Source: Phallusia mammillata (lineage: Eukaryota). From it: a DNA stretch of 64,000 nucleotides. Positions 19,121-46,522 of this stretch are shown piece after piece. The notes below the pieces were generated by a model that was not told where the DNA came from, made no database searches, and saw only the letters and a program-made list of their open reading frames with translations. Position 1 is the stretch's first letter; every line of letters starts with the position of its first letter. The stretch is from positions 10,478,001 through 10,542,000 of the forward strand of contig OZ281494.1 of the NCBI GenBank assembly GCA_965637545.1, written 5' to 3'. Made by a program: the position numbers and the translations under genes.

Positions 19121-22106
19121 CTAATCATCAGCTTCTTCGTTTTCGGAACCAGAACTAATTGGAGTTCCAAGAAGACCAAGAATTCCATGTTCTGGGTTGA
19201 AACCACCTCGCCTGGGTCCGAAAGGTCCTGGCCGTGGAACAAAACTACCGCGGTGAGGTCCGAATGGTTCCGGTTTTCCAACTGTAACACATCGTTAAGT
19301 TGTAACACATGGTATGTTTGCGTTGAATTAACAACATTTTGTACAATTTGAATTTGAAGGTTGTTTCAAATTGAAGTGTATATTCGAAACAGCAAGTCAA
19401 GATTTTAAAGGCATTTTTATGAAACTCACCTTTTGGGGCGCATTCCATCAAGCACTTAATACATTTTTTCTTTTCCATTTGTTCGCTTTCGGTAAGCGGA
19501 GGACACTGAAGACAATCGATTCTCGCTTGACGAATGCACTCTGCCTTATCGGTGCTGTTTCCTGCATCTGTATCACCTAAAAATTAATTGAAATTGTCAC
19601 AATCATCTGACACCACAGTTGATTGGGTTAATATAAAATGTGCTCACCACATTCCTCTTTGACACATTTTCTGCATCCGATAGTAGCGTTGATCATCCTC
19701 ATTCTGGCTTCCTTTGGTGTGGGACAACTAGCACAGTTTTCTTCGCTTCGCGCACATGTGATCACCTTCAATATTTTATGCAGGAATTCTTTTGGCTTGG
19801 AAAATCGATCATGTGGACGTCCTCGACCACCAAATGGCGATCGTCCGCGTCCACCAGAGAATGGTCCAATTCCTCCTAACATTGGTCGGGGCCCACCAGT
19901 TATTTGTGAAAGGAATCCAGCAACTGGTCCGTTTGATCTTGGTAAAAACTGTGTCATGCCAGACATTGGACCACGGCTACCTGATAATGGTCCGATCCCT
20001 CGTGACATTGGTCGTCGACCACCTGAGATTGGTCCGATACCCCCTGACATTGGTCCGCGTCCAACAGAAAATGGTCCGATACCCACTGACATTAGTCCGC
20101 GCCTACTAGAAAATGGTCCGATACCCCCTGACATTGGTCCGCGTCCAACAGAAAATGGTCCGATACCCCCTGACATTAGTCCGCGCCTACTAGAAAATGG
20201 TCCGATACCCCCTGACATTGGTCCGCGCCCACCAGAAAATGGTCCGATACCTCCTGATATCGACCCGCGTCCACCAGAGAAAGGTCCCACTCCGCCTGTC
20301 ATTGGTCTGTTTTGTCTCGGCCTTTCAAAGCCTTGACCCATTCCTTGTGATATCAGTGGCACTATGGACTGGAGCAAACCGGGAAGACCTTCTTGGCCCA
20401 AGATTGATTCAAGACCGAAACCAAAGCTTTCCTCGTTAGATTCTTCTTCACTTTCATCGTCGTCATTATCTGTAATCGTCGAATATTTCAGTGAACAAAA
20501 TCAACAAAGATTTCGTTTCTAATAATCACAACTTACGTTTTTTCGAACATTGTTTTAGACACTCAAAACATTTTTTCTTATTCATCTGATCAGCATCACT
20601 CAGTGGAGGACACTCCACGCATTCTTGTCTTGCTTCGGCAATGCAGCTTGCGTCTTCTGTTTTGTTTGTTGACATTTCGCCTATAAAAGTTAACCACCAA
20701 ATAAAATAAAATAGTAAACAAATACAAAGTAACAAAATCTATACTTTGTGTCATTAACTTACCGCATTCCTCAGTGACACAATCCTTGCACTCTTTCTTT
20801 ACGTTTTGCATCTTCTCTTTCATCTCCTTCATGTTTGGACAGTATTGCAACATCAAACATGTTTTATGGCAAGTACTTGACGGCTTTCGTCGTCTACGTG
20901 GTTTGTTAGCTGAAAGAGAACCTAAATATTGCAAACGTTTAGTTTGTGTTCAGTTTTTTGGGGGATATAGCACATTTGCGTCAACTTACCTCCAAACGTG
21001 TTGTAACCTGGACCCATGGGCCCACCAACGCTTCCTTGCCCTATATTCAAACCCATTCCGTTATTTCTTGTTCCAATGCCTGTCAAAAATCAAACAAGAT
21101 TAAATAGTTCATGAGTTTATAAGGATGTGTTTTTGTCCTTTTGTGTGTTTGGAAACGTTCTTACCTCCGAATGGTGTGGGTCGGACTCCATTGCTAATCA
21201 CTCTCCCTGGACCTCTGCGATCTAAATAAGCAGTAAATTTGCATTTTATTATAGTTACTATAAGAAAAGAAAGTAAATTTTTGTAATAAAATGTAAAGTT
21301 GTTGTAATCAAACGCTACGATTCTTTATCAGATTATTTTAGCACAGATTTTAATTGTTACCATGTTTGCGACATTGCATGAGACACGACGAGCAATTGAT
21401 CACACGTTCCCTGTCTTTTGTGGGAATCGGAGGACACGAAGTACAATTTTCAAATGCTTCCCGGACACATTTCATCACAGCACGTCTGTCCAATGGATCG
21501 AGTTGACCTACAAAACATATTCTTTATTTTTCTCAACGCACAATGAACATGTTGCATTAAACGTTTCGAATCGTTTTGCCCAAGTTCTTGAGGAAATGTA
21601 GTTTCAGAATGTTAAAGCTTTGAAGATTTCCACTCACCGCAACTGGCACGGATGCAGTCGCGACATTCCTTTCTGTCTTCTTTGGTCTCGTTCTTGATTT
21701 CTTCTCGACTTGGGCACTTGGTTGGACCGACGCAAGCTTTTATGCATGCCAGTTTACCACGGGACTCTCCACCTGCGTCTTCTGTGTTTGCTCCTGGATA
21801 ATTGTTGGGTCTTCTTCCGCTCAGAAGAGCTTCCAACCCTGGAAAGTTTGGTGGCCCCCGTCGCGGAAACCCTGAACATAAAAGTTTGATTTGGACTGAT
21901 TTGTGCAAAGCGTTTAAAATTACAACATCACAGAATTTTAGCAACTGTGATTCAACGTGAACCCTTTTTTACAGTTTAATTAAACGTAGCGGCAAAAATT
22001 TTTTGTGTGCGAATTATATCAAAATAGTTCGAAAATGTTGCTGAAACATTCAGTGTTTACCTTGTGCCACAACGAAAAACACGGCCAAAATCACGTAGGA
22101 CTTCAT
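19121..22106 (-). CDS. Secreted six-module Cys-rich / Gly-Pro-repeat protein, copy A3 (~668 aa)
   Basis: Same exon structure as A1: signal exon 22106-22061, stop 19123-19121. Has one 42-nt repeat more than A1. Confidence 0.87.
19849..20310 (-). repeat. Coding 42-bp minisatellite, 11 units
   Basis: Units counted from the A3 translation. Confidence 0.92.
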
Positions 22107-23742: not shown

Positions 23743-24307
23743 GCTATAGGGGAAATTCAAAAACAGTATTTTGAGTGTTGTGGCCGGACGTTTCGGAATA
23801 CGTTACAGGTACAAGTTTAGAAAAGCACACATGCTTCTGAATCACAGTTATCACGTGCGCAACAACAAACAACTAAAAACGGAACAAAAGCATGAAATTT
23901 TTCGTATGTGACGACAAAGTTCCGGATAAATTATAACCTCCGGTAGCTGATTAAATAAAGACACCACACCCTAGGTGAGGCAAACTTGTTTTCGAATACC
24001 TCGCTATCACGTGACTGTGACGTAGATGGTAAAAGTGTTTGTATTTTGCCACAACACAATTATCGTTCATTCCGATATCGTCATCGATAGATACGTCTCG
24101 TCTCACTGTGAATGGTCTTTCAACTGGAATAGTTTTTCTCTTCTGTATATCGGACACCCTGCTCTGCAGTCGTTGTCAGAGGGCAATGTGATGTATGTGA
24201 CGTCCAATCAAACCTTTGGACAAAGATCGCCCCAGACGGTGTTTCAAACTGTGAATCGTATCAAATTTATCAGTTTTGCTTGTCTTAACCCCTCGTAGTA
24301 ACCCGAG

Positions 24308-24628
24308 CAGAGATGTAAGCGGGACGGAAATTTGAGCCGAACCCGAAAGTATAAGCCTAAACCCGAATCGTTTTGGAGAAGCCCGTTTAGACCCGAAAGT
24401 TTGCTTGACAGACCTATAATAAAGAAGAAACACATAATGGACAATAGTAGAAAATGCCTTTAAACAAGCAGTTTAGGGATGTTGAGCATTAGGTTATATC
24501 CAGTAACTAGCTGCTTAGCTCGGTAATTTACATTAAAAAAAGTCAGGCCCGAATTTAGCCGGTTTGTAACAAAACCTAAGCCCGAACCCGAACCCGACCC
24601 GAAAAGACCGGCCCGACTTATAACTCTG
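24308..24628. mobile_element. hAT-type MITE (copy of 8719-9059) in the intron of the MS4A relic
   Basis: TIR cagagatgtaagcggg / ggcccgacttataactctg; TSD acccgag / aactcaag. Confidence 0.8.
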
Positions 24629-24899
24629 AACTCAAGAGTCAGTGAAAACACGTTTTCAATTCCCAATGATCATCTCCCTATTTTTAACTCTTTGCCCTAT
24701 TTCCATAGAAATTTCCCACATGTCCACTTTTGTCAATGGCCCTCAACTTCGCCATATGCCCTCAACACCTCTATCTAGCAAACGGTTAATTTCAATCTGC
24801 CTCATGGCAGCAGCCCCACCTGGCGGGTTTACACTGCTCAAGAGCAATCACGCGAGGCGATAAACAGCTACCCGACTCGTGCTGTAGCAAAGCGCCAGG

Positions 24900-25006
24900 G
24901 CAGGAACTTGGCCGAATGGTCTGGCGCGCCTGACCCATATACAGACATAAAAAAACTGATCGGGATTCGTCCCCGGGAGTGTCCTGGGTTCGAACCCCGT
25001 GAAAAA
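24900..25006 (+). mobile_element. tRNA-derived SINE-like retroposon
   Basis: A-box-like TGGCCGAATGG, B-box GGTTCGAACCCC, A8 tail, and an 11-bp TSD aaagcgccagg (24889-24899 / 25007-25017). Removing it restores the MS4A last-exon frame. Confidence 0.85.
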
Positions 25007-27079
25007 AAAGCGCCAGGAGGCATTTAACTCCATCTACACGCCCCACTTAACGGATGACAGTCAACCCCCGTTATATGAGTAAAAAAGGGCGAGTCAGCAA
25101 TTTTCATCGATTTAGCGAACATCATCACTGCGCAATGAGATGTACAAAAAAATGTTAGAATCAGCTTCATTTAAAAGAAACACACATGAACAAATTTTGT
25201 AAAAGATGATAGCAATAAGTGTACAAACTACTTCAACACACGACGCTGTTGTTTATATTGTAACAAAATTCAGTAACATACAAGTTTGTTTTCAAATCCA
25301 CAATAAGTTGTTTGTACAAAATATACAAAACCTTGTTGTCACTAATTATAATCTCATTTTTGCGCTATTTAGGTCTTTTAGGTGTCGTCGTAAGTGGACT
25401 TTTGGAACCACCATGACGTGTAATCATAAGTTTTAATTAACGCGCAGTTATCTACCAACGTCAACTTGGCGTAAATGGTCATACGTATTATCAATATTAG
25501 TTCTACTACTAGTTATTTACTTGTACCGACTGTATCATAGGCAGAAAATTGGTTAGAATGTTTAGCGAACAACTGTCCCTTATTTCCAATAACTGAGGCT
25601 TTGAGGAGTGATTTTTTAAAGTATTCGCTTTTGAAGGGTTACCTTGACTGACCTAATCTTGGTACACACCTAAACCGACGACAACATGATATAATTGATT
25701 TACAATGTACTCCAGGATGTAATAACTACAATTTACTATTGGTTATTGTGACGCTTAAGGACTATTTGATTTAATCGACTTCCGTGTGCGTCGAGTCAAC
25801 AATTTTGGAGATAATAACTAATTTTGGCCTCCTATCTTCATTATGGTATAGTTAACGTACAGCAGACTCTAAAAACTTTTTTGATGTCAATAAAAAATAT
25901 TATGTCTTCGCATTTGCCATGTTAATACGTAAAAATGATAGCAACCTTATCCAATTTAAATGTAATCAGTTCGGTTTGACGAGCAAAGGTTATTCTTTTA
26001 TGATGCCAATGTTAGATTACACACTGCAAAAGGGCAATGTAGTTTTCCGCACATTCCCGCAACCAAGCTAAGTACTACGTGACATAAATCATGAGCAAAT
26101 GTTGTAAATTTGGAACTTCTATGTGTGTTTTACACTCATTTAAGTCTGCGAAAATCTTTTTTGGCGACAAACATATAACGGACATCACGTTTTAATGCAA
26201 TATATTGAGCAAAAGGTTATTTCGAAGAAAGGCTGTAATCAGATTTCGGTTGAGTGGTTTTTGGTCAAATATGGTTTTACAGAATTTGCTTTAGATACTA
26301 AATCGGTTAAATATGTATAGCCCTGGGTATAAATAACAAGAAAAACGAGTCACTGTGGTCAGGTCGTGCTTTATTTGTACCCCTGGGGTGTCGATAAACG
26401 TGTGTATCGCTTAACTGAACAATTTTGCCAACAAATTATGCTTGCAGTTTGTCCAAGTGAGAGGAAATTTATAACATACATAACTAACATTTTGTCGGCA
26501 TTTAACCTTGATTTATTGCTGTTTTATATTTACTTGTGTCTGTCGATTTCCGTATTGCACCTTATTTAATTAGCGTGTTTTTTGTATTGTGTGCAACATA
26601 AAAGCTGTTTAAATCAAAAACGTATACCAGACCGGTTTAAGTAAACTTTGTGAAAAAGTTGTCAATTTTATTTTTACCGCTTAATGGAAATGGGAAAGCC
26701 TCACAGGTATTTTAAACGTTGTGGCCGAACACTTTCGCACACGTTACAGTATGTGAGGTACAAGTTTAGAAAAAAAAAACATGCTTATGAATCATACTCA
26801 TCACGTGCGCAACAACAAATAACTAAAACGGGAACAAAAGTATCGAATTATTGTCCTATGTGACGACAAAGTTTGGAATAAGTTATAGCCCCCGGTAGCT
26901 GATTAAAAAAGACACCACACCCTATGTGAGACAAACTTATTTTTGAATTCTTCGTTATCGAGTGCATGTGACGCAGCAACGAGGAAGGTAAACTTATGGA
27001 ATAAAAATAAAAGACAAGGACAAAACAATTTCTGACATTTCCATGAAGTAAACACAGGTATCAACGTGCAAATACACTG

Positions 27080-27235
27080 CGTAGCTTCAGGGCCTAAGAT
27101 TACAGTCAGATTATACTAACTTTAACCTTTCCAATTCTCATGCCTTGGGGCTGAATGTGTCGAATATAAAACGAACCTGAGTTTCGACTTTATTTCAGCT
27201 TTATTTTTGAAAGTCAACTTAGAGAATTCAAAGGT
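27080..27235 (+). promoter_or_regulatory. Putative core promoter and non-coding first exon of B
   Basis: agcttcagggcctaagattacagtca (~27084-27109) is nearly identical to the inverted copy upstream of C (~37858-37888); TATAAAA at 27165; donor aaag|gtaagt near 27233. Confidence 0.55.
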
Positions 27236-27339
27236 AAGTGTGTTATATGCACTAAAATATAACATTCAGTGATAACTGTTTCTTATGTGCGTTAAAAGTC
27301 GTCATTTTGTACTTTGCAGAGTAACAGCGACATACGATC

Positions 27340-30300
27340 ATGAAAACATTACTGTTTCTTGCGGTGTGTTTAGTTGTTGTCCAAGGTTGGTACCGAAGTT
27401 TTTATTAATGCCTTAATTTTGTTAAAACGTTGCCCAACTGATGTAGCACATGTGTATTGTGTTCAAACGGCGCAGTCGACGTATTGCATTTAAGATTATT
27501 TTACGCCTGCAGTAAATTTTACCTTTATGTTTGATGAAACAGGCTTTTCTTGAGTTACTGTAAAATAAGATTTCTATGAATTACAACTATAATCAATATA
27601 CACGATTTTTCATTCATAAAAATACGATTTTTTTTAGTCGGTATCGGGTCTCCTAGGTCACCTAAACCAAGTGGGGTAAACACTGACCGTCGAGACAATT
27701 CAAAACAGCGTTGCATGGCGAAATGCACCTCATCGAACAAGTGCCCTGTTCGCGAACCTGACAGCGATGCTGTGCAGGACCAACGGCAAGACTGCAAGGA
27801 CTGCCTTACAAATGCCTGTGGTACGTCTTAGCTAACCGTACGAAGTTAATGTGACATTGTTAATTGTATTTAAACTGCAAATTAAATTAGACCAGATGAT
27901 AGAATCGTCACTTGTACAAATGGACTGCATCGCTTTTGGGCATTTAAGTATATTTTGTAAAAGCATAGAGCCAATAAATGATAAGCTGCAGACAGTGCAC
28001 ACTGTTTCGACCTATAAGGTCTCATCAGTGCAGCAGCGGTAACGAGAGATCGGCCGCATTGGCTAGTGTAGCCATTCAACGGCACTACAGTTTGTTGGGA
28101 GCACAGGGTACAACCCCATGCATCACCTAGTCTGAGCGATGCCACAACTGGACTTGGGAACCACAGTACTGTGACACTGAGCCGACTTCACTGTGGTTCC
28201 CAAGCAGTTGCTTGGCCATTGTGAGCCAGTTTCATCTGTGCTGTATGTCCAGTTGTGGCATCGCTCAGACTAGGTGATGCATGGGGTTGTACCCTGTGCT
28301 CCCAACAAACTGGAGTGCCGTTGAATGGCTACACTAGCCAATGCGGCCGATCTCTCGTCACCACTGCACTGATGAGACCTTATAGGTCGAAACAGTGTGC
28401 ACTGTCTGCAGCTTAAGTATATTTTTGTTTATAGGTTACTTTGACCGGTCTAATAAAAGCACAGTTCAAGATTGTGTAGAAAATGCAAGACCAAGTTGTG
28501 CGGCCTGTCCCACCCCTTCGCCAGTTGAACGAGCGGTCAAAGCTAAATGCAACAGATGCGTCAAAAAATGCAGGTCAAAAAGCCGTAAGTTTTGTTTTTT
28601 ATTGGTAATATTATTATTATTTTGTTAATTCAACAGTTAAAGCTGCACTTTGAAAAAGTTGTGATTACCATTTTACTAAAATGATTGGTTTTGTACAATA
28701 GGGGCTAAAACTGCAAAACATTTTTTAGGCTTCATTGCAATCATGTTCATCTTAAACAATTAAAAAAATCTAATCTTTAGTGATTTTTTTAGCTCGTTCG
28801 CCAAAGCCTGGACGCCGTGACCGAGGTAAGTGATGCATTTCATTTTTTTTACTTTTTTAATCTGTAAATGTTTGTGATGTTTTTAGATGCTTGAAATATT
28901 TAAAACCAAACGTAACGTTTTAACACACAGATCTATGTTTTGCAACACATATCTGATAAAAGAGTTATTTGTTCATGACTTTTCTCCTTTAAGGTCCAAA
29001 TTATTGCGTCTTTACTTAATTTGTAGATTTTGAATAAACTTTAGCTTGTCGGATTTTATATATTTTTTCGCATAAGTAACAAGGGGCTAACCAATAAAAC
29101 TTATATTACTGACGCTAGAAATTCAACCGTTTTACAGATTCAGGAACTGCAAGCAAATCACCGAAGCCAAAACGCCAATGCTATAAATCGTGCATCAAAA
29201 CTGCGAACTGCACAAGCTTAAATGTTGTCAAGGAGCAGATGAAGGCGGCTAGAAATGCCTGCAGAGAATGCGTGAAGGAGATTTGTGGTAAGAACAACTT
29301 CTTTACTTAAGTTTGTAGTTCATGAAAAGTTAAGATAGTACATTTTATGGTTTAATTTAAGTTTTATAATCTAATGTTTCAATGAAGCCCCAAAGTGTTG
29401 CCCATCGTGTTTTATTTTTTTCTGCTTCATTTCGCATTAAACGAATAGACAAAATGAAAACTCAACAACATTAATTCGTGATAAAAATGTGTGACACATT
29501 TAATTTTGTTTTTTGTCAAAAATTACAAGATCCCGCTTAACGCTAATTTTTTATGTCATAATTTTAATGCAGGCCCGTACGACAAGACCAACCGCAGCGA
29601 AATTGCTGAGTGCATAAAAGATGCCAGAGAAGAATGTGACGAGTGCCCTCCAGTGCCTGTTCAAGATCAAGTTGAAAAAAAGAAATGCAAAGTCTGTCTT
29701 CGAAAATGCTCACCAAAGCCCGGTAAACTATTGCTGATGCAACACCAACGTCGTAAAACATTTCTAATATTTTTAAACTTAAGATGCCCATATTGGCCAA
29801 ATGACTATAGTACATGAACTTATTGATAATGACCTACAAACTTTTAATCAGATTTGCCAACGTAACTGGTACATATAGCTTAAAAGGCTCAACGCACCAT
29901 ACTATTGGCATTGGATTTCTTTGACCTGACAGAACAGAAACTATATCGGTATAACTATATGTCTACCAAAAATCGGTATCGATCTTAAATATCGTATCGG
30001 TCGATTCCAACTGTAAACACGTGTCACGTCAAAATAGCTTTAATTTAGTAGACCAAAATTTATTATTCACGAAACGTTACACACTCATATCACGAACTCA
30101 CTTTTGTCTTGCAAAAAACACCAGATTGTTCACTTTTATGTAACATATAGTCAAATTCCTGTTTTAGCTGGTCGTGCAGCACGCAGATTGGGAAACATAC
30201 GCGGCTCTAATCGTGGAGAAGGGTCAGCAGGTCGCCGGGAAAGCTCGTTGGAGTTTCTTTTAAGAATGGCCAAATGTATTCGGAATCGTCCTGTTTGCAA

Positions 30301-31488
30301 ATCCTGTCCCAAACCACAGGTCATGAGAAAGAAGTTGCAAAACGCAACAAAGGCTTGCAGAGCATGTGTTAAGGAGGAGTGTGGTAAGTAAGACAAAAAT
30401 GATTTTCATTAAACATGGTTTTCGTTGTTTGCTGTGGTTCATATGATGTGTGGCAAATTTTATGTTTATAACTGTACTAAATTACCAAAGATTAAGCATA
30501 GCACACTGGACAAGTAGATGTATTTGCAACAGCATAATTTAATACAAAAACAACATTTACTGTTAACTATTAAAATACAAATTGTTGGTAGAATTCAGTG
30601 ATATTCAACCGGTGTTTCGCATAAAATTTATTAGTTTGACTACATTTTAGTTTGGTGTTCTGCAAGATCTTTTTAATGCATCTAGTGTTCTTTAAAATAC
30701 TGGTATAATTAATGATTGTTTACAATTACATTTCTTTTCAGGTGACATTGATCGTAGTAACAAGACCGAAGTGGCGGAGTGTGTCCAAGAAGCGAGAGGT
30801 GACTGTACTTATTGTCCTCCCATCAGTGAAGAGGATCAAAGAAACAAAAAGAACTGTAGCAAGTGTCTAAAGGGTTGTGCATTTTCCAAGGGTTAGTTTT
30901 TTGTAAATGAGCTTAGTTCAATTGCCCATTAGCACCCATTGCAATAAGGTATTTTTAGTCACGTAATAACTTATTTAAAAGTTACTACAAGTATAACTTA
31001 TAACCACGGCCAAATAACTTATTTACATCTGCCTTAAACGTACATTGCGTGTTTTCCTTGAAAAAAAAGTGTTTGAAATTTTCTGTTTAACGACGTATAA
31101 CAATTGCAAGCCGGCCTGAACTCGGTCCGTAGGCACGAACTGTTTTGATACAAATCCTATACTAGGCACGACAGTTGTTGAAATAACGACAAGAATATGT
31201 TTTTTTTTTCAAACAAAGCCTGAACCTAACCCGACTTACATTTTTGTAACAAATGTACTGAAACTATCTTAATGATACTTTCTATTTTCTTCAACATTTT
31301 ATCGCTTAGGGATTGATTGATTAAACAAACAAAACTTATTTGCAACAGGGGTAAGCTTTTTCCTGGGCGGGATACTTTCGAGATTATATGGACATCCAGG
31401 CCAATCAAGACCCTCCTTTTCACTCCCTTGGCCGCCAACGCCAGGTCGAAACAACAGAGGCACACCAAGGGGTGGACTATACATTTAG
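27340..31488 (+). CDS. Secreted six-module Cys-rich protein, divergent compact paralogue B (9 coding exons, ~405 aa)
   Basis: Exons 27340-27385 (MKTLLFLAVCLVVVQ), 27638-27820, 28435-28584, 28793-28825, 29138-29287, 29573-29722, 30168-30383, 30742-30891, 31349-31488 (..PRGGLYI*). All phase 1, GT-AG, frame open. Same A-B-A-B-A'-B module order as A1-A3 but without the long Gly/Pro repeat. The last exon is supported by an in-frame homologous exon in paralogue C. Confidence 0.88.
27984..28413. mobile_element. Long-hairpin MITE with ~185-bp terminal inverted repeats, TA-flanked
   Basis: agctgcagacagtgcacactgtttcgacc... is mirrored almost perfectly by ...ggtcgaaacagtgtgcactgtctgcagct. TA on both sides suggests a Tc1/mariner-like TSD. 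A second inner inverted repeat (ttgggaaccacagt / actgtggttcccaa) is present. Confidence 0.88.
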
Positions 31489-32249
31489 AATTGACACGAA
31501 TGAAACCAAAACACCTTTTCTTGTAAAACATGACCAAATAAAAAAAATGTTTGTTATAAACATCAAACTAGTAATCATTGCTGTAGTGTTATGATTTGTT
31601 TCTCTTCAACATATATTTTTAAGTTACACGTTGTGGTTGATTTGATTGCACAAACGATGGGCGCAACTGTTGTTGTTTAATGATCTTTTAAGTGTAGACT
31701 GGAATAAACCAATGCATCATATGACGAGTAGCCAGTGAGACAGGTAGAGAGTTAAAAACAAGTCAAGAGTTTTTTGTTATTTTTATAACAAAACCTCACC
31801 CAACCATTGCCACAATCATCAAATTTTCAAACCATTTTCCATCCAAATTGGTGCTAATATTTTTTGCATTAGCTACAGGTATTCACCAAAATTCAATTTA
31901 ACTTTTGATGTAATTTACTAATTTTAGGTGATGTGAAAAACGTGCTCCGATAATTTTTACAATAAAAAAGCATAGCAACGAAGAACCGGGCGTTCTTCGT
32001 CACTTTTCAAACCCAGCTACCCACTCTAAACTAATACGTTTTTGAATAGTGTTATCCTATTAAAATAAAGTGTTAATATCAGGTGGAAGTAAGAAGTGTC
32101 CCAGATCATCCACACTCGAAATTTCACTAATTTAATCAATATTATAAAATGAAAAGTCTAAAAACTGATTTCTATTCACATCGATACTTTCTGTTGAACT
32201 TGACAGGTCACAAAGCGAAAAAAAATTATTGGGTTATTTAGTTCGGCGC

Positions 32250-33660
32250 AAAAAGGCTACAGCCAGGTTTTTTTCAAAAACGGGGTCAAAATTAGTGGTT
32301 TCCGATTCCGTTTTAAACCGGTTTGGAGGTTCGGTGGGAGGCAGAAACAGGTTTTTCCGTTTTTGGAAGTTTTGGAAAAAAACAGGATTTTTGGAAGTCA
32401 AAAAAATGAAGAAAAATCCGGTTTTGCATGGCTTTCATTCCAGTTTCAAACTGGTTTTAGCTGGTTTCAGTCTCCTACAAAACTTTCAAACCGGTTTAAA
32501 CCGGAATCGGAAACAACTAATTTTGACCTGATTTTCGAAAAAAAAAAAAAGGCAATAGCCCTTCCGTTTTTTCGTTTTTTGGGAGTCAAAAAATGAAGAA
32601 AAATTCGGTTTTGAGTGGCTTTTCGCCGGAATATTTAGTTTCAAACCGGTTTCAGCCGGTTTCTGCCTTCTACCAAACCTCCAAACCAGTTCAAAACGGA
32701 ATCGGAAACAACTATTTTTAACGCGATTTTCGAAAAACCCTAAGGCTGTAGCCTTTCCGTTTTTTTTCCATTTTTGGGAGTTTTGGGGGAAAAAACAGGA
32801 TTTTTGGAAGTCAAAAAAATGAAGAAAAATCCGGTTTTGCATGGCTTTCATTCCAGTTTCAAACTGGTTTTAGCTGGTTTCAGTCTCCTACCGAACCTCC
32901 AAACCAGTTCAAAACGGAATCGGAAACAACTAATTTTGACCCGATTTTCAAAAAAAAACAAAGGCAATAGCCGTTCCGCTTTTTCGAATTTTGGGAGTCA
33001 CAAAATTGAAGAAAATCCGGCTTTGGGTGGTTTTAGCCGGAATATTCCAGTTTCAAACAGGTTTTAGCCGGTTTCTGCCGCCTGCAGAACCTCCAAACCG
33101 GTTTAAAGCGCAATCGGAAACAACTAATTTTGACGCGATGTTCGAAAAATCCTAAGGCTGTAGCCATTCCGTTTTTTCGAACTTTGGGAGTCAAAAAATG
33201 AAGAAAAATCCGGTTTTGGGTGGGTTTTCGCCGAAATATTCCAGTTTCAAACTGGTTTTAGCCGGTTTCTGCCTAGTCCTACCGAACCTCCGGTTTCTGC
33301 CTCCTACCGAACCTCCAAACCGGTTTAAACCGGAATTGGAAACAACTAATTTTGACCCGATTTGTTTAAACGAAAACAACTAATTTTGACGCAATTTGTT
33401 TAAACCGGAATCGGAAACAACTAATTTTCACCTGATTTTAGAAAAAATCCTAAGGCTGCCTCCTACCGAACCTCCAAACCGGTTGAAACTTGAATCTGAG
33501 CGACATAAATTTTTCCCCATCTTTCAAAAAAAAAAACCTAAGGCTTTAGCCTTTCCTTTTTCGGAATTCGGGCGTCAATAAATTGGAGAAAATTCCGGTT
33601 TCGGGTGGGTTTTGCTGAAATAATCCGGTTTCAAACTGGTTTTCTACACTACCTAACCCT
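32250..33660. repeat. Satellite-like element of ~190-bp units (about 7), first unit inverted
   Basis: The motif gaagaaaaatccggtt recurs near 32408, 32596, 32821, 33009, 33200; ccgaacctccaaaccggtttaaaccggaatcggaaacaactaattttgac recurs. 32250-32350 is the reverse complement of the later units. Confidence 0.85.
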
Positions 33661-33853
33661 GTGCTTGTCCGTCATATGATGCATTTCTTAATTTCTGACG
33701 ACAATTTGAAGATTATTAAATAGCAAGTAGTGTCCATCGTTGGTGCAAGCACAAACCAACCAGGACGTGCAATTGTTGAAATATATGTTGAGTACAAAAC
33801 AATTCATAATACTACAGATGTTATTCTACAAAAGGTGATTCCTTGTGTACATT

Positions 33854-36800
33854 CTAAATGTACAGTCCCCCATATGGTTGCCTTCTTGGTTCGATCCTGT
33901 TGTTCAGACCTGGAATTGGTCGACAAGGGTGGCCCAGTACTATAATAAGGGGTGGTATTCTTTGTGTTGGTTGTAAGAATATAAAATGAAGGATCCCGCT
34001 CCGAAAGAAAGACATTCCTGTTGAAAATTATTTTGTTTGTTTAATCGATTTTCAAACAATTAATGACAGACAATAAGAGCGGTCATAATTGTTTTTAGAC
34101 ATTTGTTTTATGGCGTTAAACAGGAGAAATGCAAATACATTCTTTTTATCAAATCTGAAAACACACAATTACCTTGAGTTTGCAGTATGGATTTTCGTGT
34201 CATTTATGAATGAATCTTAGACTTAAATGTGCGCTGTGTTTTGTTACATTGCATTCTAATTGGTAATTCACTATTCGTACTTTTCTATGTATATTTATAA
34301 CAAAACTAGCCTTTGGAAAATGCACACCCCTTCAGACACTTTCTGCAGCTCTTTTTGTTTCTCTGTTCCTCTTCACTGATCGGAGGACAATAAATACAGT
34401 CTCCTCTCGCTTCTTGGATACATTCCCCCATTTCGGTCCTGTTACTAATATTAATATCACCTGAAAACAAATTTAATCTTAAATAACGCATAATACCAAC
34501 ATGTTGTGCATAATTGTGCTGTAGCAAATGTTTTTATTCCCAGTGCGCTACGTTTGAAGTTTTTGATTAGAATACTTGCAACTTTAAAAAGCTGAACAAA
34601 ACGTCATACGGACGACATAAAGGTTAGGTCAAACGTAAAAATAGGTTGTTGACAATTACTTGTTTTTCTGACTTACCACAATTCATCTTAACACATGCTT
34701 TGCAAGCCTTTGTTGCGTTCTGCAACTTCTTTCTCATAGCCTGTGGTTTAGGACAAGATGCGCAAATTGGACGATTCCGAACACATTTGATCATTCTAAA
34801 AAAAAGTCACCAGCTAATCCTCCTCCCCGATTAGAGCCGCATCTGTTTCCGGATCCACGTCCTCTACTACCAGCTAAAACAGGAAGGAATTTGTTTTGAT
34901 TATACCCAAAAGAGAACAATGTGGTGTTTTTGGCAACACAAAAGTTTGTTATTAATTCAAATCAGTGGCGGTATTCAATTTTTTTGTCAGCCGGTTCTAT
35001 CACAAAAGTGAAAATTTTCAGCCGGTTCTGTTACAAAAAGTCTATTGACAACTGGTTCGCTGATCTCAGAAAATTTCGTGAGACGGTTTTGCAGAACCGA
35101 ACCGGCCGAATCCCACCACTGATTCGAGTATGCAAAGTTTCTTTTATTATTATTTTTAGACTAACAAATTAGAGCGTTCTGACAGAACACGTGTCTATAA
35201 TTGGAATCGACCGATGGGTTTTTTTAAGGCCGATATTCAAGGCCGCGAACAATATTTTTTCTGTACTGTCGGCTTAAAAAAACACAATACCTATAATATA
35301 TTGCGTTTGGGGTTTCAAGCCATGTATACCAGTTTATTTGGCAGATTAAAAACTTGTGTGTGCTGCTAATATCAATAAGTACATGCATTGTTCACATGGT
35401 CGCTTGAATAATGGATATCTAAATTTAAAAAAGCACATTTGAAGTGTTGTAGTACGCTGGTTTAGCATCAGATCAGATAACCTGAATTCGGTAAGCACTT
35501 TCGAAGACAGACTTTGCACTTCTTTTTTTCAACTTGATCTTGTACAGGCACTGGAGGGCACTCGTCACAATCTTCTCTCGCATCTTTTATGCATTCAGCA
35601 ATTTCCCTGCGATTGGTCTTTCCGTACAGACCTACAATATATAATGACTATATCTGGAATTAGGTGTTACTAGGATCTGACTCTATTTGAATTGAATGTA
35701 AAAACCGAAACAAAGTGCGGTATTTTTTCAAGCATATAATTTGTGTTTTTTTGATTAGCCTCAATAAAGACAAACTTTTATGTGGCAAAAATGCGATATG
35801 TAGCACAAAAGCCGTAACGTGTAGCAAAAGAAAGTTTTTTTTTAAAAGAAAAAATATGGTTCCATTGAAATATCAAACTATAAAAGTAAGTTTAGAAACT
35901 ATCGGATTAAACTACAAAATGCACCATCTTGTCTTCGCCATTTTAGCCATATTCCTTCCATTTATCAAACACACCCCTTCCAGTGCTGGAAATTCAACAA
36001 ACGAATAACTCCCAGAACTTCGAAATTGTGATTTCCGGAGCCCAATCATAGAGCAAACCTAATTGCACATGTTGTTCTTACCACAAGTCTTCACCACGCA
36101 TTCTTTACATGCATTTCGAGTCGATTCCATTTGTTCCTTGACAACACTTAATCCTGTGCAGTTTCCAATTGCAACGCACGATTTATAGCATTGGCGCTTT
36201 GCCTTCGTTGATTGACTTTCAGTTCCTAAATCTATGAAACTATGGTTATATTTCCAGCGTTAGCAACAGAAACACATTAAGTGGTTAACTGCTAGTTTCT
36301 TGTACAAAGTTATTTAAGTATATTAAGCCAGACAAGTCCAACCTTTTTTAAGTCAAATAAACAAAATGAAACACTTTTGTAAACTGATACTCAAATAAGG
36401 TGACAAAAATGCATGCAGTTTTTCTTTTTGATTAAAGTGATGATTACAAAAAAGTAATAGCAAAACTTACGGCTGTTCGACGTGCATATATTCACGCAAT
36501 TGCTGCATCTAAAGTTGGCCACTCGTTCACGTGGCGAAGGAGTAGAACAGGACTTACAAGTTGACTTCGCTTGTTCCAAACAAAATTGAGATGAATTGAG
36601 ATTCTACCGAGCTGGTTAAAGTTAACTAAAAGCAAACAAAAAATCCATGAATATTAAAAACGATTTTGAACATTTGTGTATGTGAAAATTCTGCCTTGTC
36701 ATTTACTTTCTTATTTGACAGGTTAATTCAGTAGTTTCCAACCGAGGCGGAAATCCTCGTTAGGGACAACTTTTAAAACTTGAGGGTAATAATTTTCTCG

Positions 36801-37599
36801 ATTTTTTCATATGGTTGGTAAATAGATACTTAAGCTCTGGGAATACGTCCTGTGTAGTTGATAAAAGGCCCAGTTTTAATCAACTTTTGTATAGTTTAGC
36901 ATTTACTATGTAGTGTATTAGGGAGGAATGAAAATGTTTTGAGTTGAGGAATTCATCGATCAAGGTTGAAGACCACTGCGTTAAACAATTAACAATGTGA
37001 TGGTAATTTCGTAGACTGTTAGCGGCACCTAAAGACATACCACAGAAATTTCTAATGCAGTTCTTGCAGTTTTGGTTTTGCATCGAATCGCTCTCGTTCT
37101 CACGAACCTGGCATTTCTTCCATGAGATGCATTTTGCCATGCAGCGCTGCTTGGAATTGTCTTCACCAGAACGGTGAGTGCTTGCACCACTTGGTTTAGG
37201 TGAACTGGGGAACCAGTTACTTGCTTAAGAAAAAAGTGCATGCTTTTATGAATGACAAATCGTTTATTTCGGATAGATTTTAGTTAAAGTAATTGCATTA
37301 TAGCTGAAATTCATAGAAATCGAACTTTATGGGTTTTATGAGGGCCTACTCTTACTCAGACAAGATTCGGCTATAGGCGTCATAAAACATTTTTTTACGC
37401 GCCTACATTGTATGCAACGAGTGCACTGATGGTACACGATTCAAATGCTTATTTTACACAAAAGTGGTTAGCCTCTTATATCATAAACCAGTTGTACGAC
37501 ATATTTAAGTGTGTACAAAATGAAGGAGTTTTACAAAAAATCCTTGTACCAACCTTGAGCAACAACTAAGCACACCGCCAGAAACAACAATGTTCGCAT
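33854..37599 (-). pseudogene. Disrupted paralogue C of gene B (inverted copy)
   Basis: Exons 37599-37554 (MRTLLFLAVCLVVAQ), 37223-37041, 36625-36471, 36231-36082, 35631-35482, 34873-34677, 34460-34311, 34017-33854 (..YGGLYI*). Lesions: exon 3 is 155 nt versus 150 in B, and the alternative acceptor at 36611 gives an in-frame TAG; exon 7 is 197 nt (1-nt loss in a T8 run near 34798-34805); the exon 8 donor is GC instead of GT. Confidence 0.78.
34963..35121. mobile_element. Short hAT-type MITE in an intron of gene C
   Basis: TIR cagtggcggtattc / gaatcccaccactg; degenerate TSD attcaaat / attcgagt. Absent from the matching intron of B. Confidence 0.7.
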
Positions 37600-38629
37600 A
37601 ATTGCGGACAGCCACTACTCTGCAAAATACAAAATAACGACCTTAAAGGCACATAAGAACCAATCACCACTGACACGTTATGTATTAGTACATAGAATCA
37701 ACTTACCTTTTATTGCCCCGTAATTCATTTGTTGAATTTCATAAAAACATGAAGCTGAAATAAAGTCAAATCTAAGAGCTTGTTTTCCGATCGACACTTT
37801 ATAACTTAAATAGGCCTCCAGGCATGCGAATTGCAAATGTTGATGCTGGAATATTGTGACTGTAATCTTAGGCCCTGAGGCTTCGTTGCGTATTTGCAAA
37901 TTGATACCTGCGCTTACCTTATGGAAATGTCAAAAACTTTGTGGCCTTTTTCTTCAGTTTGGCTCCATAAGTTTACCCTTGTTACCTCTACGCCAGGATT
38001 ACGTGAGAACGAGGAATTTGAAAACAAGTTTGCCTCAACAAAAGTATAACAGACACAAGAACAACTAAATAGTTATCAACCACGGTCAAATACAACGTTT
38101 TGCAAAAAAAATATTTTCTGTACAAACAGCAGATTGTGGTTTCGGAAGCAAAGTTGTACATTCTTTAAATTATTGAGCAGCGGCGCAATGTCCGAGTCAT
38201 GTTAGAAACGTGTAAAGAGGTAGAGCAACGCGAAATAGGCGTTTATAAAGAGACAATGGCGATTAAAAGTAAAAAAAGCGAATAGAACGCTTCGATGCGC
38301 ATAAGCGAACACGGTAGTGAGGTCGCTACAACCTAACAGCAAAATCGACTATTTCGATATGCCAGTGTGTAAAAGGTAAACCACCAGGCAAAACTGCTAA
38401 TAAAATAAAACAAACAAACAATACAAAAGCAAAACCGTGATGTGTTGAAATCGTATGTACACTTATTGCCATTATCTTGTACACAAATTGTGTCTGTGTG
38501 GTTCATTTTAAGTAAATTTGATTTCTAGCCCAAGCTTTTATCAACGTAGTTGCACAGAGGTGTTGTTCAATATTTTAATGTAAATTGTTGACCAACACTT
38601 ATTTGATTGAAAAAATGTGTTTGCTCTTT

Positions 38630-41335
38630 TTACTCATATGACGGGGGTTGGTCAACATCCGTTAGGTGGGTGGTGTCTGCCGTGTTAAACGCCTCCTGGT
38701 ACTTCGCCTGTGCATGTACAGCACCAGTCGGGTAGTTGTTTAACGCCACCACGTGGCTGTTTGTTGTTGCTTTAGACGCCGCTTGGTCGGGCTGTTGTTG
38801 TGGGGCAGCTTGTAAGTATATCGTTTGCGGGATGTCTGAGTTGGTAACACCTGCGAAAATTAAATTCATATTCAGCATCCAGTACGCAATTCGTGTTTAT
38901 CACGCGTACATACATGACTTTACAAGTTTTAGTCAGGCAGGATACACAAAGGAATTAAAAACATGGTCGCTCGGACCCATTGTGTTACACGTACTACCAG
39001 GGGTATAATTAAGGCACAACCGCAGTAACATATGTAATTTTTTATGTTTTTTGTAAGCTAACCTTGCACAACATAAGGCACAGTTTGTCCAAAGGCTTGG
39101 TTGGTCGTCACATACATCACATTGCCCCCTGACAGCTGCTGCAAATAAAATGATTATGGATAAAGCGTGCTTTGCAAAACGTAGTTTTTGCAGATGTACA
39201 CAACTACTGATGCAATTTTGTTCAGGCTTAGTAGATACATAGGAGACCTTTATTGAAATAGGAAGCCGTGAATAATAAAAAAAAGGTTGTATGCAATAAA
39301 TATATTCAAACAACCAGCAACATTTAGACACAACTTTATTAATGAAGTTCCCTACTTGATTTTGGTCGCAGCAGCTCCCGCAACAGTTTGAAGACCCCAT
39401 ATTAATGGGAGAAGCACAACAACACAGAGCAGCACTAGCAATGCACAGCACCAAACTGACAAAACTGAGCACTGCAACAGTAACCTCGATTCCCACTCCA
39501 AAGCTGTAACCCTGCAAATGTATTTAGGGCATTAATAAAAACATACCCGGTCCAAGCGCTACAGCACCCTGGCAAAGAGGGGTGATTGTGATTTGATGCA
39601 GTGTTAAGCTCAATTCATTTGGCACGCAGTCATTGAAACGTGTCTTATAAGTGGAGTCGCACATTAAGTTCAAGGTAGGTCAAATAGTTTGTACGTTGGC
39701 ATTCTGTCTATAAGCAACAATGTTGTAATGAGCGAAAGCAATCTTAATAACTTGACACAAGTACCAAACGTGGGCGATAAAAAAACATTTGTTATTTGCT
39801 TAAAATCTAAATAGATCATTCAATGAAAACTCCTGTGAAGACCGCAGGCGGGTTCTGCCAATTTTTTACACTGCGTTGCAAAAAAAACTTTGAAAAACAC
39901 TAGGTACAAAGATAGAAAACCATCTTACTTCATATGTAAATGCCATTGCTAGTGCTATAGCAAACATGGCAACAGAGAAGCTGGCTGCAACAATCGAAAA
40001 GGCCAAATGACAATTGACCTGAAAAAAGAGTATTGTTTTATGTTGCTTGTGTTGTTTGTAAAAAAATAAGTGGTTTCAGCAACAAATATTTTGAAACAGC
40101 AATTATTTAAAACAGCAATAACCTGTACCAATACGTAAAATGTTGCATGGTCACAATTACAATGACATCATACAAAGTTTGTTTACATACCAAGCACGAA
40201 GTAACAGTTTTCTTCCCGCAAGCAATGCCCAAAGATCCACCAATAATAACCTGCAGATAGTATTTGGTAATACCAATGTTCGTTTTTTAGTAAATATAGT
40301 GGAAGCGGATCAGGTAGATAATAGTTTGTTGATCTAATTTCCTTAAAGTGTTAAATAAATTACCCAAACTCCTCCCCAAAGACCTTCACCGACGTTGAAA
40401 CAGTATCTTAAGTATGCACTGTAAGCGGGAACAGAATAGCAGCGATGATCTTCCCGGTTGTTGATGTATGCCACCGCGACAGTTCCTAACAAAGAGCAGA
40501 TCAGGCCAAGGACAGTTTCCGTCGCCTACACAATAAAGGAAGAATTCAGTCGCTGCAAAATATCTACTTATGACAAAACTTTAATTAAAATTTCCAGTAT
40601 TTCCCAGCTTGGATCGTGGAAGTACATTATTTTTACATATTTTTTGAGAAAAATTTAACTCTTTTAGGCTTCAATAGTTTTAAGCTCCTATGTTTTTAAA
40701 CGCAAAGACATAAATTTCACCACTTTGGGTACTTTACAATGATTTAACAGTACGTCAACGGAGCCACTAAAAAGTTATGTCATGTAAAAAATGGGTGTGC
40801 TAAGTTTATGTTGTGATATCAGCCAGGTAAATACTGTTACATATGTCTACATGTCGACAATACGCCACAGATTGTACTTTTAGGTTTGCCGCAGCTGTCA
40901 TGCCCTTGCACTCATTGTCTTGTTGTGTAACACAGTATTGCGTAACTTTAGTTACATTTAGTTACAATACCAACTTTTTTCAAAAATAACTCTTCCACTC
41001 TTGCAGCTTAGTTTTATAAGCTGCAAGAGTGGTTTGAATTACCAGACGAGTGGGAAATCAACCACAACCCTAATACACCGTTTTATATTGCATATTGGGC
41101 CTTAAATATTTTCCAATCCTGTGTATTGAAGTAAGATTTACTCCCGCATTGTAACTAAACAGATAAAACACGTAATACCACATTGTTACAGAAAATTGGC
41201 ATCAAATATTACCCCGAGTGCTCGTAAGTTATTCTTGTTTTTGCTCATTCTGGCTTCGTCGTTAGCACCGCTGCTTGGTATTCCAACTACAACGCCTTGG
41301 CTGTCACTCTGCTGATGTACATGTTGGGTTTGCAT
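38630..41335 (-). CDS. MS4A/CD20-like four-transmembrane protein M1 (7 exons, ~295 aa)
   Basis: Exons 41335-41213, 40525-40364, 40250-40191, 40018-39929, 39511-39356, 39138-39063, 38850-38630. Motifs: ..LRALG|ATETVLGLIC (TM1), GEGLWGGVW|VIIGGSLGIACGKKTVTSCL (MS4A-type TM2), two more hydrophobic segments, ALCCC after TM4, C-terminal PPSYE. Confidence 0.88.
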
Positions 41336-43548: not shown

Positions 43549-46522
43549 TTACTCGTATAATGGAGGTTGGTCGTCATCCGTTAACTGGGTGGTGTCTGCG
43601 GTGTTAAACGCCTCCTGGTGCTTCGCTTGTGCAGCACCAGTCGTGTAGCTTTGTGGCGCCACTGTGTGACTGCTTGTTGTGGGTTGCAATGACGTTTGGT
43701 GGGGCTGTTGCTGTGGGGCAGCTTGTAAGTAAACCGTTTGGGGGATAGCGGTATCGGGAACGCCTGGATAAATGAAGTTCATATTCAGTGTCCAGTAAAG
43801 TACTAGTGTTTATCACGTGTACATCCAGAACTTTACGTTTCAGTAAGGCATGGATGATATAAACACTGCAGATTTAACTGTTCTGTTCTATTTTCATTGA
43901 CAAACACGTGTACGCATAAAGAATTTTCATTCCCACAAAGCAAAATGTTAAACAACCACCAGAAGAGAATTGGGAATTTACAACATGGTCGCTCGGACCC
44001 ATTGTGTTATAAGTACTACCAGGGGTGTAATTAAGGCACAACCGCAGAAAGATGTAAATTGCCATGTTTTTTTAGTAATCTAACCTTGCACAACATAGGG
44101 CACAGTTTGAACCATCGTCTGTTGCGGTCTTTGTCCAAAGGCTTGGTTGGTCGCCACATACATCACATTGCCCCCTGACAGCTGCTGCAAATGAAATGAT
44201 TATGGATAAAACGTCCGTTGCAAAAGCTACTTTTGGTAGATGTACACGCCTGTTGATACAATTTTGTTCGGATTTAGTGGATACACAGGCGACCTTTATT
44301 AAAATAGGAAGCCGTGAATAAAGAAAAATATATGTCCACTGGTTTAATTAAATAATCAGGGGCACATTTGAATGGACAACTTTCTTTAATATTACTTTAT
44401 GACTGTCAAACATTTTTTTCAATGAAATTCCCCACTTGATTTTGGTCGCAGCAGCTCCCGCAACAGTTTGAAGACCCCATATTAATCGGAGAAGCACAAC
44501 AACACAGAGCAGCACTAGCAATGCACAGCACCAAACTGACGAAACTGAGCACTACAATAGTAACCTCGATTCCCACTCCAAAGCTGTAACTCTGCGAAAA
44601 ATTTGATGGACTTTTGATAAAAAGCATGCATGGTCTTAAACGCTATAGCAAACCAATAAACATATGGTAATTGTAATTTCGTACAGTCTTAAGTTAAAGT
44701 CATATAGCATGCAGCCGTGGAGAACAAGTCATTGCATTAGAGTCGCACACTAAGCCGAGTCAAGTCATTTCTTGTGAGTTCGCTTCTCCTCAATTAGCAA
44801 CAATGTTGGAATGAGCGACAGCAACACCAAACGCGCGCTATTCGACACAAATTGTACACTACGTACAAAGATACAAAACTACCTTACCTCATATATAAAT
44901 GCCATTGGTATCGCTGTTGCGAACATGATAGCAGAGAAGATGGCTGCAACGATCGAAAAAGCCAAATGACAATTAACCTGGAAAAAATGTTATGTTTCAT
45001 GTTGTTTGTACAAAAAGGAAAAATGGATTATGTACATTTAAATTGGAACAAGTGGTTCCAGAAACAAGTACTTTACAACCGCAATTATTACTAGCAATAA
45101 CGAAAAAGGTTGGATGGTCAGAAATACAATGCCAGTTACTACAAAGTTTGTTTACATACCAAGCACGAAGAAACAGTTTTCTTTCCACAAGCAATTCCCA
45201 AAGATCCACCAACAATGACCTGCAAATCGTATTTGTTAATACCAATGTTCGTTTTTTTAGCAAATATCGTGGAAGCGGATCAGGTAGATAATAGTTTGTT
45301 GATCTAATTTTCTTAAATATTACTCTAACTTCAACTAGTTTTAAATTTATTACCCAAACTCCTCCCCAAAGACCTTCACCGACGTTGTAACGGTATCTAA
45401 GGTATGTACTGTAATATGGACAAGGATAGTAGTTGGAACTGTATGAACTACTTCCATAGTAGCATGGATCGTATGTATGATCTTCTTGGTTGTTGATGTA
45501 TGCGACCGCGACAGTTCCAAGCAATGAGCAGATCAGGCCAAGGACAGTTTCCGTTGTCTACAGAACAATGGAATAATTTAGTTGCTTTAAAATTTGTACT
45601 TCGAACAAAGCTTTACTGAAATACAATATTACCCAGCTTGGAGCAGGGGGTATTATTTTTATTGAGAAAAATTAGGATCTTGCTAAAAACTTTAAATTCA
45701 ACTTTTCTGATTAAAAGTTATTTCTTGTTTAAACCCTGTTAAGTTTTAAGCTCATGCAGATAAAACGAAGTTTTAAAACGCAAAAACATACATTTCACCA
45801 CATGGCTACATTAAGATTTTAGATGACTAACAGGGCGTGGTCAAAAACGGTTAGCACCTAATCAGTTCATACGTGAACAGACCCACTAAAAAGTTTTGTC
45901 ATGTAAAAAATGGCGGTGTTGTGGAAACAGGGTGGAAAGAAATTTGACTACTGTGAAACAATTAGTTAACATTTTATTTATAGAATAAAATCAGTCAGGT
46001 CAATTCGTACGCTCATACTGTTAACTATGTCTACATGTCGACAAATCGTAATAGGTTGTATTTTTAGATTTGCCATCGCTGTGACAAAAGCCCTTGCATT
46101 CATTGTCCTGTTGTGTGACACACTATCGCGTAATACTGAAGCCAGTCATACCTCAGTATGAATTTTCACGTTGCAATACCAACTATTGCTAAATAGTGGT
46201 TTTAAAAGCTGCAAGAGTGGTTTAAACTGGATGAGTGGGAAATCACAACCAAATACACCGTTTTCCTATTAAATATATGGCCTTAAATTCCAATCGTGTA
46301 TATTGATTAAATAAGAATTAATCCTACATCGTAATTAAACAAATAAAACACGCAACACCAATTTTTGTCATACAAAATTGGAATTAATCAACTATTTACC
46401 CCGAGCGCTCGTAAGTTCTTCTTGTTTCGGCGCATTCTGGCTTCGCCGTTAGCATTGCTGCTTGGCATTCCAACTAAAACGCCTTGGCTGTCAATCTGCT
46501 GATGGACCTGCTGAGTGTGCAT
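43549..46522 (-). CDS. MS4A/CD20-like four-transmembrane protein M2 (7 exons, ~315 aa)
   Basis: Exons 46522-46400, 45557-45354, 45219-45160, 44977-44888, 44591-44436, 44184-44085, 43763-43549. Frame open, same phases as M1, ends PPLYE. Confidence 0.88.

Follow-up and report, generated by a model that had tools for sequence, protein, structure and literature searches.

Inverted segmental duplications, or palindromes, are a recognised form of gene-cluster architecture in which reverse-complement arms surround a spacer, divergence is even along the arms, and a truncated, intron-bearing gene copy may lie at the outer boundary. In reciprocal, or divergent, gene loss each arm carries one intact and one disabled member. 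We describe a locus of Phallusia mammillata with likenesses to both, where genes for cysteine (Cys)-rich modular proteins adjoin an array of genes with four predicted transmembrane (four-TM) segments. The stretch analysed, hereafter the window, comprises 64,000 nucleotides (nt) (NCBI GenBank assembly GCA_965637545.1, contig OZ281494.1, positions 10,478,001 to 10,542,000, forward strand). An earlier reading of this DNA, the original prediction, held that one two-gene cassette had been duplicated tail-to-tail and that each arm had then lost a different member. We find that the inverted duplication is real. Our overall account, which we hold to be probable, is that both copies of the Cys-module gene (B on the left, C on the right) were retained, that C decayed recently, and that the four-TM fragment on the left was truncated at birth. 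Unlike typical palindromes, the arms are old (~70–88% identical), show no sign of arm-to-arm conversion, with synonymous divergence (dS) in exons close to intron divergence, and enclose a spacer filled with a genome-wide 195-bp satellite.

Comparison of the window with its own reverse complement (inverted-repeat search and blastn self-comparison) revealed an antidiagonal running from 24165/39143 to 31726/33670, with at least 10 collinear matches at 66–88% identity and E-values down to 1e-75 (Table 1). This is the continuous match series that the original prediction implied, with reverse-complement arms in collinear order beyond chance and the left (+) and right (-) arms sharing one gene order. 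Coordinate sums of paired matches stay between 63.3 and 65.4 kb throughout, and the right arm is tiled by DNA contigs of two public sequencing runs, X2 and X3. The left arm is longer (~7.5 kb against ~5.5 kb) because of insertions on that side, among them an unmatched 1.7 kb (25261-26927) with no right-arm counterpart and, within B intron 2, a foldback element. The upstream block expected on both arms was found on each, together with a further local + strand copy close to the four-TM relic.

Divergence along the arms is uniform. Kimura two-parameter (K2P) distances in four non-coding segments spanning both gene parts fall between 0.33 and 0.37 (0.35 in the four-TM 3' flank, 0.33 in the B/C 5' flank, 0.37 in B/C intron 5, and 0.35 in the B/C 3' flank), and dS between B and C is 0.50. 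The four-TM part and the Cys-gene part are thus of the same age, whereas very different ages would have spoken against a shared origin. Because neutral divergence is even along the arms, the sequence points to one old tail-to-tail event that took in the 3' end of a four-TM gene, the intergenic region, and the Cys-module gene together, as had been proposed. An accidental collinearity, in which gene B and the four-TM fragment came to lie on the left through unrelated events, could draw on the unmatched 1.7 kb and on the extra copy of the upstream block. We nevertheless consider it highly improbable, since order, orientation, and spacing agree across both parts and their neutral divergence is equal (0.35 versus 0.33–0.37).

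Table 1 Coordinates of features of the inverted duplication and its surroundings, given as window positions.
Feature	Position	Strand	Details
Left arm	24165-31726	+	relic exons 6-7 of four-TM gene, 3' flank, upstream block, gene B
Right arm	33670-39143	-	M1 exons 6-7, M1 3' flank, upstream block, gene C
Spacer between arms	31727-33669		1.9 kb, mostly 195-bp satellite array
Arm match	24165-24224 / 39143-39084		88% identity
Arm match	25013-25261 / 38699-38418		66% identity
Arm match	26927-27422 / 38037-37515		72% identity
Arm match	27579-27867 / 37294-36985		
Arm match	28466-28594 / 36589-36461		
Arm match	29106-29315 / 36266-36054		
Arm match	29555-30092 / 35648-35120		
Arm match	30100-30397 / 34945-34663		
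Arm match	30716-30908 / 34486-34293		86% identity
Arm match	31581-31726 / 33817-33670		
Relic exon 6	24170-24250	+	acceptor AG kept, donor lost; 24 nt absent from M1 present
Relic exon 7, 5' piece	24778-24896	+	acceptor lost, small indels
Inserted repeat in relic exon 7	24897-25009	+	113 nt, high-copy interspersed, tRNA-like GGTTCGAAC box
Relic exon 7, 3' piece	25010-25082	+	conserved stop codon 25080-25082
Relic 3' flank	25083-25261	+	homologous to M1 3' flank 38629-38418, K2P 0.35
Upstream block and 5' flank of gene B	26707-27339	+	26927-27339 pairs with 38037-37600
Right-arm upstream block	37858-38037	-	
Extra upstream block copy	23766-24038	+	80% identical to 26707-26976; 126 nt 5' of relic exon 6
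Gene B	27340-31488	+	intact, 8 exons, 1185 coding nt, 394 codons
Gene B exons	27340-27385, 27638-27820, 28435-28584, 29138-29287, 29573-29722, 30168-30383, 30742-30891, 31349-31488	+	
Foldback/MITE-like element	27982-28153 and 28247-28415		B intron 2; 98-100% inverted repeat, absent from C
Satellite array in spacer	32252-33643		195-bp unit (Tandem Repeats Finder)
Gene C	33854-37599	-	8 exons, two frameshifts
Gene C exons 1-4	37599-37554, 37223-37041, 36625-36471, 36231-36082	-	exons 1, 2, 4 open, splice sites retained
Gene C exons 5-8	35631-35482, 34873-34677, 34460-34311, 34017-33854	-	exons 5, 7, 8 open, splice sites retained; exon 7 with GC donor
Gene C exon 3		-	155 nt; frameshift, 5-nt insertion relative to B; polymorphic
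Gene C exon 6		-	197 nt; frameshift inside run of eight T; length-variable run
M1	38630-41335	-	intact four-TM gene, 7 coding exons
M1 exons	41335-41213, 40525-40364, 40250-40191, 40018-39929, 39511-39356, 39138-39063, 38850-38630	-	
M1, M2, M3		-	three four-TM genes in ~5 kb units
A-gene tandem units (three)	1-24708	-	~8 kb each, 90-96% identical; one Cys-module A gene per unit, on -
Relic exon 6, secondary copy	8574-8651	+	A-gene tandem unit 1; tblastn; identical over 101 nt compared
Relic exon 6, secondary copy	16681-16758	+	A-gene tandem unit 2

On the left arm, the four-TM fragment has the marks of an unprocessed pseudogene, with its intron and flank kept, splice sites lost, small indels, and a repeat insertion. 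The prediction of a four-TM fragment here is borne out insofar as a dead partial copy is present, although it consists of exons 6 and 7 only. A tblastn search with all M1 exons found these two and no exon 1–5 sequence on the left or in the 20 kb beyond, and the exon 6 acceptor marks the point from which the left arm is homologous to the right. The fragment had also been called broken by a short interspersed element (SINE). As a description this is apt, since a 113-nt high-copy repeat splits exon 7; as a cause of death it is wrong. Other copies of the element are 96–100% identical, among more than 2000 first-look candidates, so that the insertion must be young. ARAGORN detected no tRNA gene in the 113-nt repeat.

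The sequence favours, at somewhat better than even chances, a fragment truncated at birth by a breakpoint in intron 5 over one shortened by later deletion. An intron 5 breakpoint is a single event, while a whole copy with subsequent deletion takes two, and exons 1–5 are untraceable while the equally old exons 6–7 remain detectable.

The relic had been regarded as the partner of M1 itself, a pairing that the four-TM sequences contradict. Informative quartet sites, counted at 15:6:1, support the grouping (M1,M2)|(M3,relic), and relic exon 6 retains 24 nt that are present in M2 and M3 and were lost from M1 by a derived deletion. Across the 3' flank, too, the most divergent of the four is the relic (distances of 0.41–0.48), with M1–M3 differing among themselves by 0.26–0.40. 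M1 thus groups with M2 and not with the relic, and the duplication is therefore older than the M1/M2 split and of about the same age as the split from M3.

Gene B is intact, as predicted, with all junctions AG/GT and in phase 1, and the predicted ends of both Cys-module genes are right. The predicted exon sizes (46/183/150/150/150 nt) are likewise accurate as far as they go; the listing ended at exon 5, after which B continues with exons of 216, 150, and 140 nt, the first and last of these measuring 197 and 164 nt in C. B and C are mutual closest paralogues, their exon peptides being 60–91% identical to each other compared with 30–57% to the A genes.

The description of gene C as broken holds for the reference, where it has two frameshifts, but the damage is light. 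Over the five unbroken B/C exon pairs (E1, E2, E4, E5, and E7), dS is 0.50 and nonsynonymous divergence (dN) 0.14, giving a dN/dS of 0.28, and every cysteine in these pairs is retained. With the A-type gene A3 as outgroup, B has undergone 8 amino-acid changes and C 11 (chi-square 0.47). The low dN/dS and the equal rates of B and C therefore show that C was constrained for most of its history.

Public runs aligned on 34200-39200 (DNA runs X2 and X3, and Logan contigs of runs X1 and X5, whose RNA status is guessed) place the two lesions in context. X2 is identical to the window sequence, and X3 represents a second haplotype with ~20 single-nucleotide polymorphisms (SNPs) relative to it. Both the window and X2 carry the 5-nt insertion of exon 3; X3 is without it, lacking 5 nt at 36594-36601, so that its exon 3 is 150 nt long, open, and has all six cysteines; this lesion behaves as that of a polymorphic pseudogene. 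The T run in exon 6 numbers eight in the window, X2, and X1 and seven in X3, and exon 6 is out of frame in every source examined. Contigs of X1 and X5 join C exons 5 and 6 (34873|35482) and exons 6 and 7 (34458|34675) with GT..AG borders on the - strand, continue beyond 34310, the end of exon 7, into sequence equal to the start of exon 8, and have zero mismatches to C; the joints are absent from the DNA runs. The X1 contig, the sole one to span the start of exon 6, includes the whole exon without skipping, and the message would therefore carry a premature stop. Differences between X3 and the window in C exons 4 and 5 (four nonsynonymous, two synonymous) are mostly not B-like, which fits relaxed constraint today and no conversion from B. 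As a cause of the higher identity of exons, arm-to-arm gene conversion was considered and rejected, since the proportion of synonymous differences (pS, 0.29–0.49) approximates intron divergence and most X3 variants do not resemble B.

C best fits the description of a young and in part polymorphic pseudogene, or of a gene that carries null alleles, rather than that of an old loss. A stronger form of the null-allele view, in which C is a working gene of the species with null alleles segregating, the reference happens to be a doubly disabled haplotype, and no Cys gene has been lost on either arm, strikes us as rather unlikely. It agrees with the dN/dS of 0.28, the equal B/C rates, the correctly spliced contigs, and the number of open exons with splice sites kept (six of eight in the reference, seven in X3); X3 is free of the exon 3 lesion, and that of exon 6 lies in a homopolymer differing in length between individuals. 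Yet none of the three DNA sources has exon 6 in frame, nor does the RNA-like contig, which includes it; the excess of nonsynonymous over synonymous differences in X3 exons 4 and 5 looks relaxed, and only two haplotypes were sampled.

These results bear on reciprocal loss, in which a whole two-gene cassette was duplicated and the left arm lost its four-TM gene, by deletion of exons 1–5 and decay, while the right arm lost C. The part of this claim that stands is that, in the reference, one gene is intact and the other disabled on either arm; complementary, fixed disablement of the two arms was not found. The relic is dead, but C is spliced and constrained on the measure given above, its exon 3 lesion is polymorphic, its damage is recent, partial, and partly polymorphic, and the left member was perhaps never complete. 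Arms of equal age, a relic with the intron, stop codon, and 3' flank expected of a once-whole gene, and the two frameshifts of the reference C all suit a duplicated cassette, and rearranged sequence left of the relic makes a deletion plausible. Set against these are the lack of any exon 1–5 remnant on the left beside equally old and detectable exons 6–7, a homology that starts at the exon 6 acceptor, the one event more that is needed than with an intron 5 breakpoint, and the recent, incomplete loss of a C still seen spliced. We accordingly regard full reciprocal loss as distinctly unlikely.

Under the account that we prefer, one old tail-to-tail duplication copied ~7.5 kb containing the gene for a secreted Cys di-module protein, the intergenic region 5' of it, and the final two exons and 3' flank of a four-TM gene that adjoined the Cys gene on its upstream side; this part is shown. 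Purifying selection then kept both B and C through most of their later history, as dN/dS and the equal rates show. The decay of C is recent, comprising the exon 3 insertion, absent in another individual, and the exon 6 frameshift common to all sources, and correctly spliced C contigs are still seen. The left four-TM fragment is seen as a dead, unprocessed partial copy with its outer breakpoint in intron 5, in which exons 1–5 were most likely never present. Later, judging by the tree, the right-hand four-TM gene would have been tandem-duplicated into M1 and M2. The neighbouring A gene was amplified as 8 kb units that included relic exon 6, and young repeats were inserted, namely the 113-nt element in relic exon 7 and the foldback element in B intron 2.

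Several points weigh against this account. Gene conversion among M1–M3 could make the relic appear older than its true age. The sequence left of 24165 has been reworked, as seen in the extra upstream block (23766-24038) and the A-unit boundary at 24708, and with a single genome to go by, truncation at birth is only modestly more probable than later deletion. The RNA evidence for C consists of Logan contigs from two runs of one study with RNA status assigned by a tool's guess, though the absence of the joints from the DNA runs argues for RNA.

The original prediction named the four-TM genes MS4A. Zuccolo et al. 2010 (PMC2826416) concluded that invertebrates are without true MS4A genes, and a Ciona gene named Ms4a15/2 by the community is Pem-7 (bioRxiv 10.1101/2021.07.12.452040). 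M1 is intact, in agreement with the prediction, and has four hydrophobic segments by hydropathy only (Kyte–Doolittle 19-residue maxima of 1.85, 1.06, 2.34, and 2.58 in exons 2, 3, 4, and 5). As in MS4A/CD20 (PF04103), the segments of the M genes are encoded in exons 2–5 and the junctions are in phase 0; the exon for the first transmembrane segment (TM1) resembles TM1 of MS4A2 (ATQILVGLICLCFGT) and the GYPFWG motif, and a paralogue of the M genes on contig C2 has a 16-bit CD20 match at TM1. M1–M3 differ from MS4A in the Cys-rich segment that follows TM4 and in the PPSY motif at the C terminus. Family and protein searches were run exon by exon. Scans with Pfam CD20 gave no match for M1–M3, nor any at M1–M3 over the whole assembly, and the TM1 exon of the C2 paralogue scored 16.2 bits against a cut-off of 27.9. 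FcεRI beta (8k7t_B) matched the TM1 exon profile only at E 8.9, PDB sequence searches with M exons 3, 4, and 5 (profiles or sequences) yielded chance matches only, and similarity to a solved MS4A protein did not reach significance. With no exon at the Pfam threshold and weak, motif-level matches only, the name is not established, and the four-TM genes are at best remote relatives of vertebrate MS4A.

Further members of this four-TM family occur on contig C2, where at least 15 additional TM4-exon matches lie in arrays at 29.02–30.34 Mb. Paralogues at C2:29096001-29106000 share the exon structure of M1, the weak CD20 match falling in the TM1 exon of one of them. By alignment, insertions rich in Tyr, Ser, and His make the loop between TM1 and TM2 longer in M2 than in M1 and longer again in M3 (40364-40525, 45336-45557, and 51663-51947). 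All three proteins have a PPxY-type C terminus, QPPSYE in M1 (38630-38650) and QPPLYE in M2 and M3 (43549 and 48409), and the dead relic has QPPLYE before its stop, at the same place as in the M genes. Motifs of the PPxY type are commonly bound by WW-domain ubiquitin ligases.

The proteins encoded by A, B, and C belong to one family in which, after a signal peptide, b-type modules (C-x3-C-x5/6-C...C-x2-C-x4-C) alternate with a-type modules (C-x7-C-x2-C-P...C-x2-C-x3-C), as seen in exon peptides and by profile search. Alignment of 16 di-modules defines a b+a repeat unit of ~89 residues with 12 invariant cysteines. Searches with the a-type profile recovered, at E 8e-62 to 1e-10, uncharacterised proteins of the ascidians Clavelina lepadiformis and Ciona intestinalis; little else matched, namely one weak echinoderm sequence and exon-sized fragments from ENA assemblies. 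By these matches the window is tunicate (ascidian) DNA and not that of a fish. The closest known relatives (Clavelina lepadiformis CAK8679626-31, CAK8680006, and XP_076815443; Ciona intestinalis XP_002132139) have the same di-module with its length and 12 invariant cysteines and share the linker 'CGP[FY]-[ND]-x-x-N-R-S', and genes of this type lie in tandem clusters there as here. They differ in their low sequence identity to the Phallusia proteins and in having 'CPTL' where these have 'CPP'.

Neither single Cys-module exons nor the Clavelina and Ciona homologues matched any Pfam family; weak Pfam matches to GPR15L, zf-H3C2, and DUF entries were taken as chance. An AlphaFold2 model of the di-module predicts helical hairpins with five helices (predicted local distance difference test, pLDDT, 73), for which a Foldseek search of PDB returned nothing at E <= 1. 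The ESM Atlas gave no usable match to B exon 6, a word search for short relatives with B exon 5 found none, and a literature search for the accessions of the Ciona homologue found nothing. In the 240 Mb searched, all strong Cys-module profile matches are at one locus, with a marginal exception (E 5.6e-4) on the same contig. This is a Cys di-module family without a Pfam model and almost exclusive to ascidians. In Clavelina lepadiformis the cluster consists of five Cys-family genes followed by DPCD, and the 31 kb read there contains no M-like gene; the pairing of Cys genes with four-TM genes is not visibly conserved in that species.

The A genes have a Gly-rich GPMSGGIGPFSGGR repeat in exon 6 (19628-20401 and the equivalents in A1 and A2), with GGGxRPMGGG repeats as the Ciona counterpart, in both cases before the last di-module. 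In B and C this place is taken by a Gly/Arg stretch that is short and not repetitive. A Gly-rich linker before the last di-module may be ancestral to the family.

To the left of the arms lie the three A-gene tandem units, with the first exon of A3 at 22106, and the Cys-module cluster as a whole comprises at least 7 genes at one locus. Relic exon 6 has identical copies at 8574 and 16681 because it was carried along in amplification of the adjacent A unit. Two older A-type genes lie on the - strand left of the window (C1:10465573-10477013, window -12427 to -738), without relic exon 6. Extra + strand copies of the upstream block (8177-8435, 16293-16561, and 23766-24038), ~80% identical to 26707-26976, stand just 5' of each copy of relic exon 6. 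The block was considered as a transposon and rejected, there being 4 copies only, all at the locus.

Among the repeats, the 195-bp satellite of the spacer matches contigs C1, C2, and C6 at more than 380 places, with long arrays elsewhere at C2 3.90 and 4.83–4.87 Mb, C6 6.18–6.20 Mb, and C1 29.4 Mb. Unit one of the spacer array (32252-32351) is inverted relative to the others. The foldback element in B intron 2, which resembles a miniature inverted-repeat transposable element (MITE), is young and high-copy, with more than 2000 first-look candidates and copies 96–97% identical on all large contigs. Rfam gave no match in the window.

A wider picture, which we put forward tentatively and hold to be somewhat doubtful as a whole, is of a fast-evolving cluster encoding lineage-restricted, secreted, helical, disulfide-stapled di-modules, with one module per phase-1 exon, beside a CD20-like four-pass array. 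C would then be a transcribed, segregating null, and the cluster would evolve by birth-and-death as immune and surface-recognition clusters do.

The events at this locus are ordinary gene-cluster evolution of a known kind, and they change no general view. What the locus offers is a well-resolved case of cluster remodelling, in which an inverted duplication gave rise to a second gene copy and a dead fragment of a neighbour, followed by tandem amplification and slow, incomplete loss. Two by-products of the analysis may prove more useful. The doubtful MS4A kinship of the four-pass genes is relevant to a question still open, namely whether MS4A genes exist in invertebrates. A second by-product is the definition of a Cys di-module family that is nearly ascidian-only and whose copies in this genome are all at one locus.

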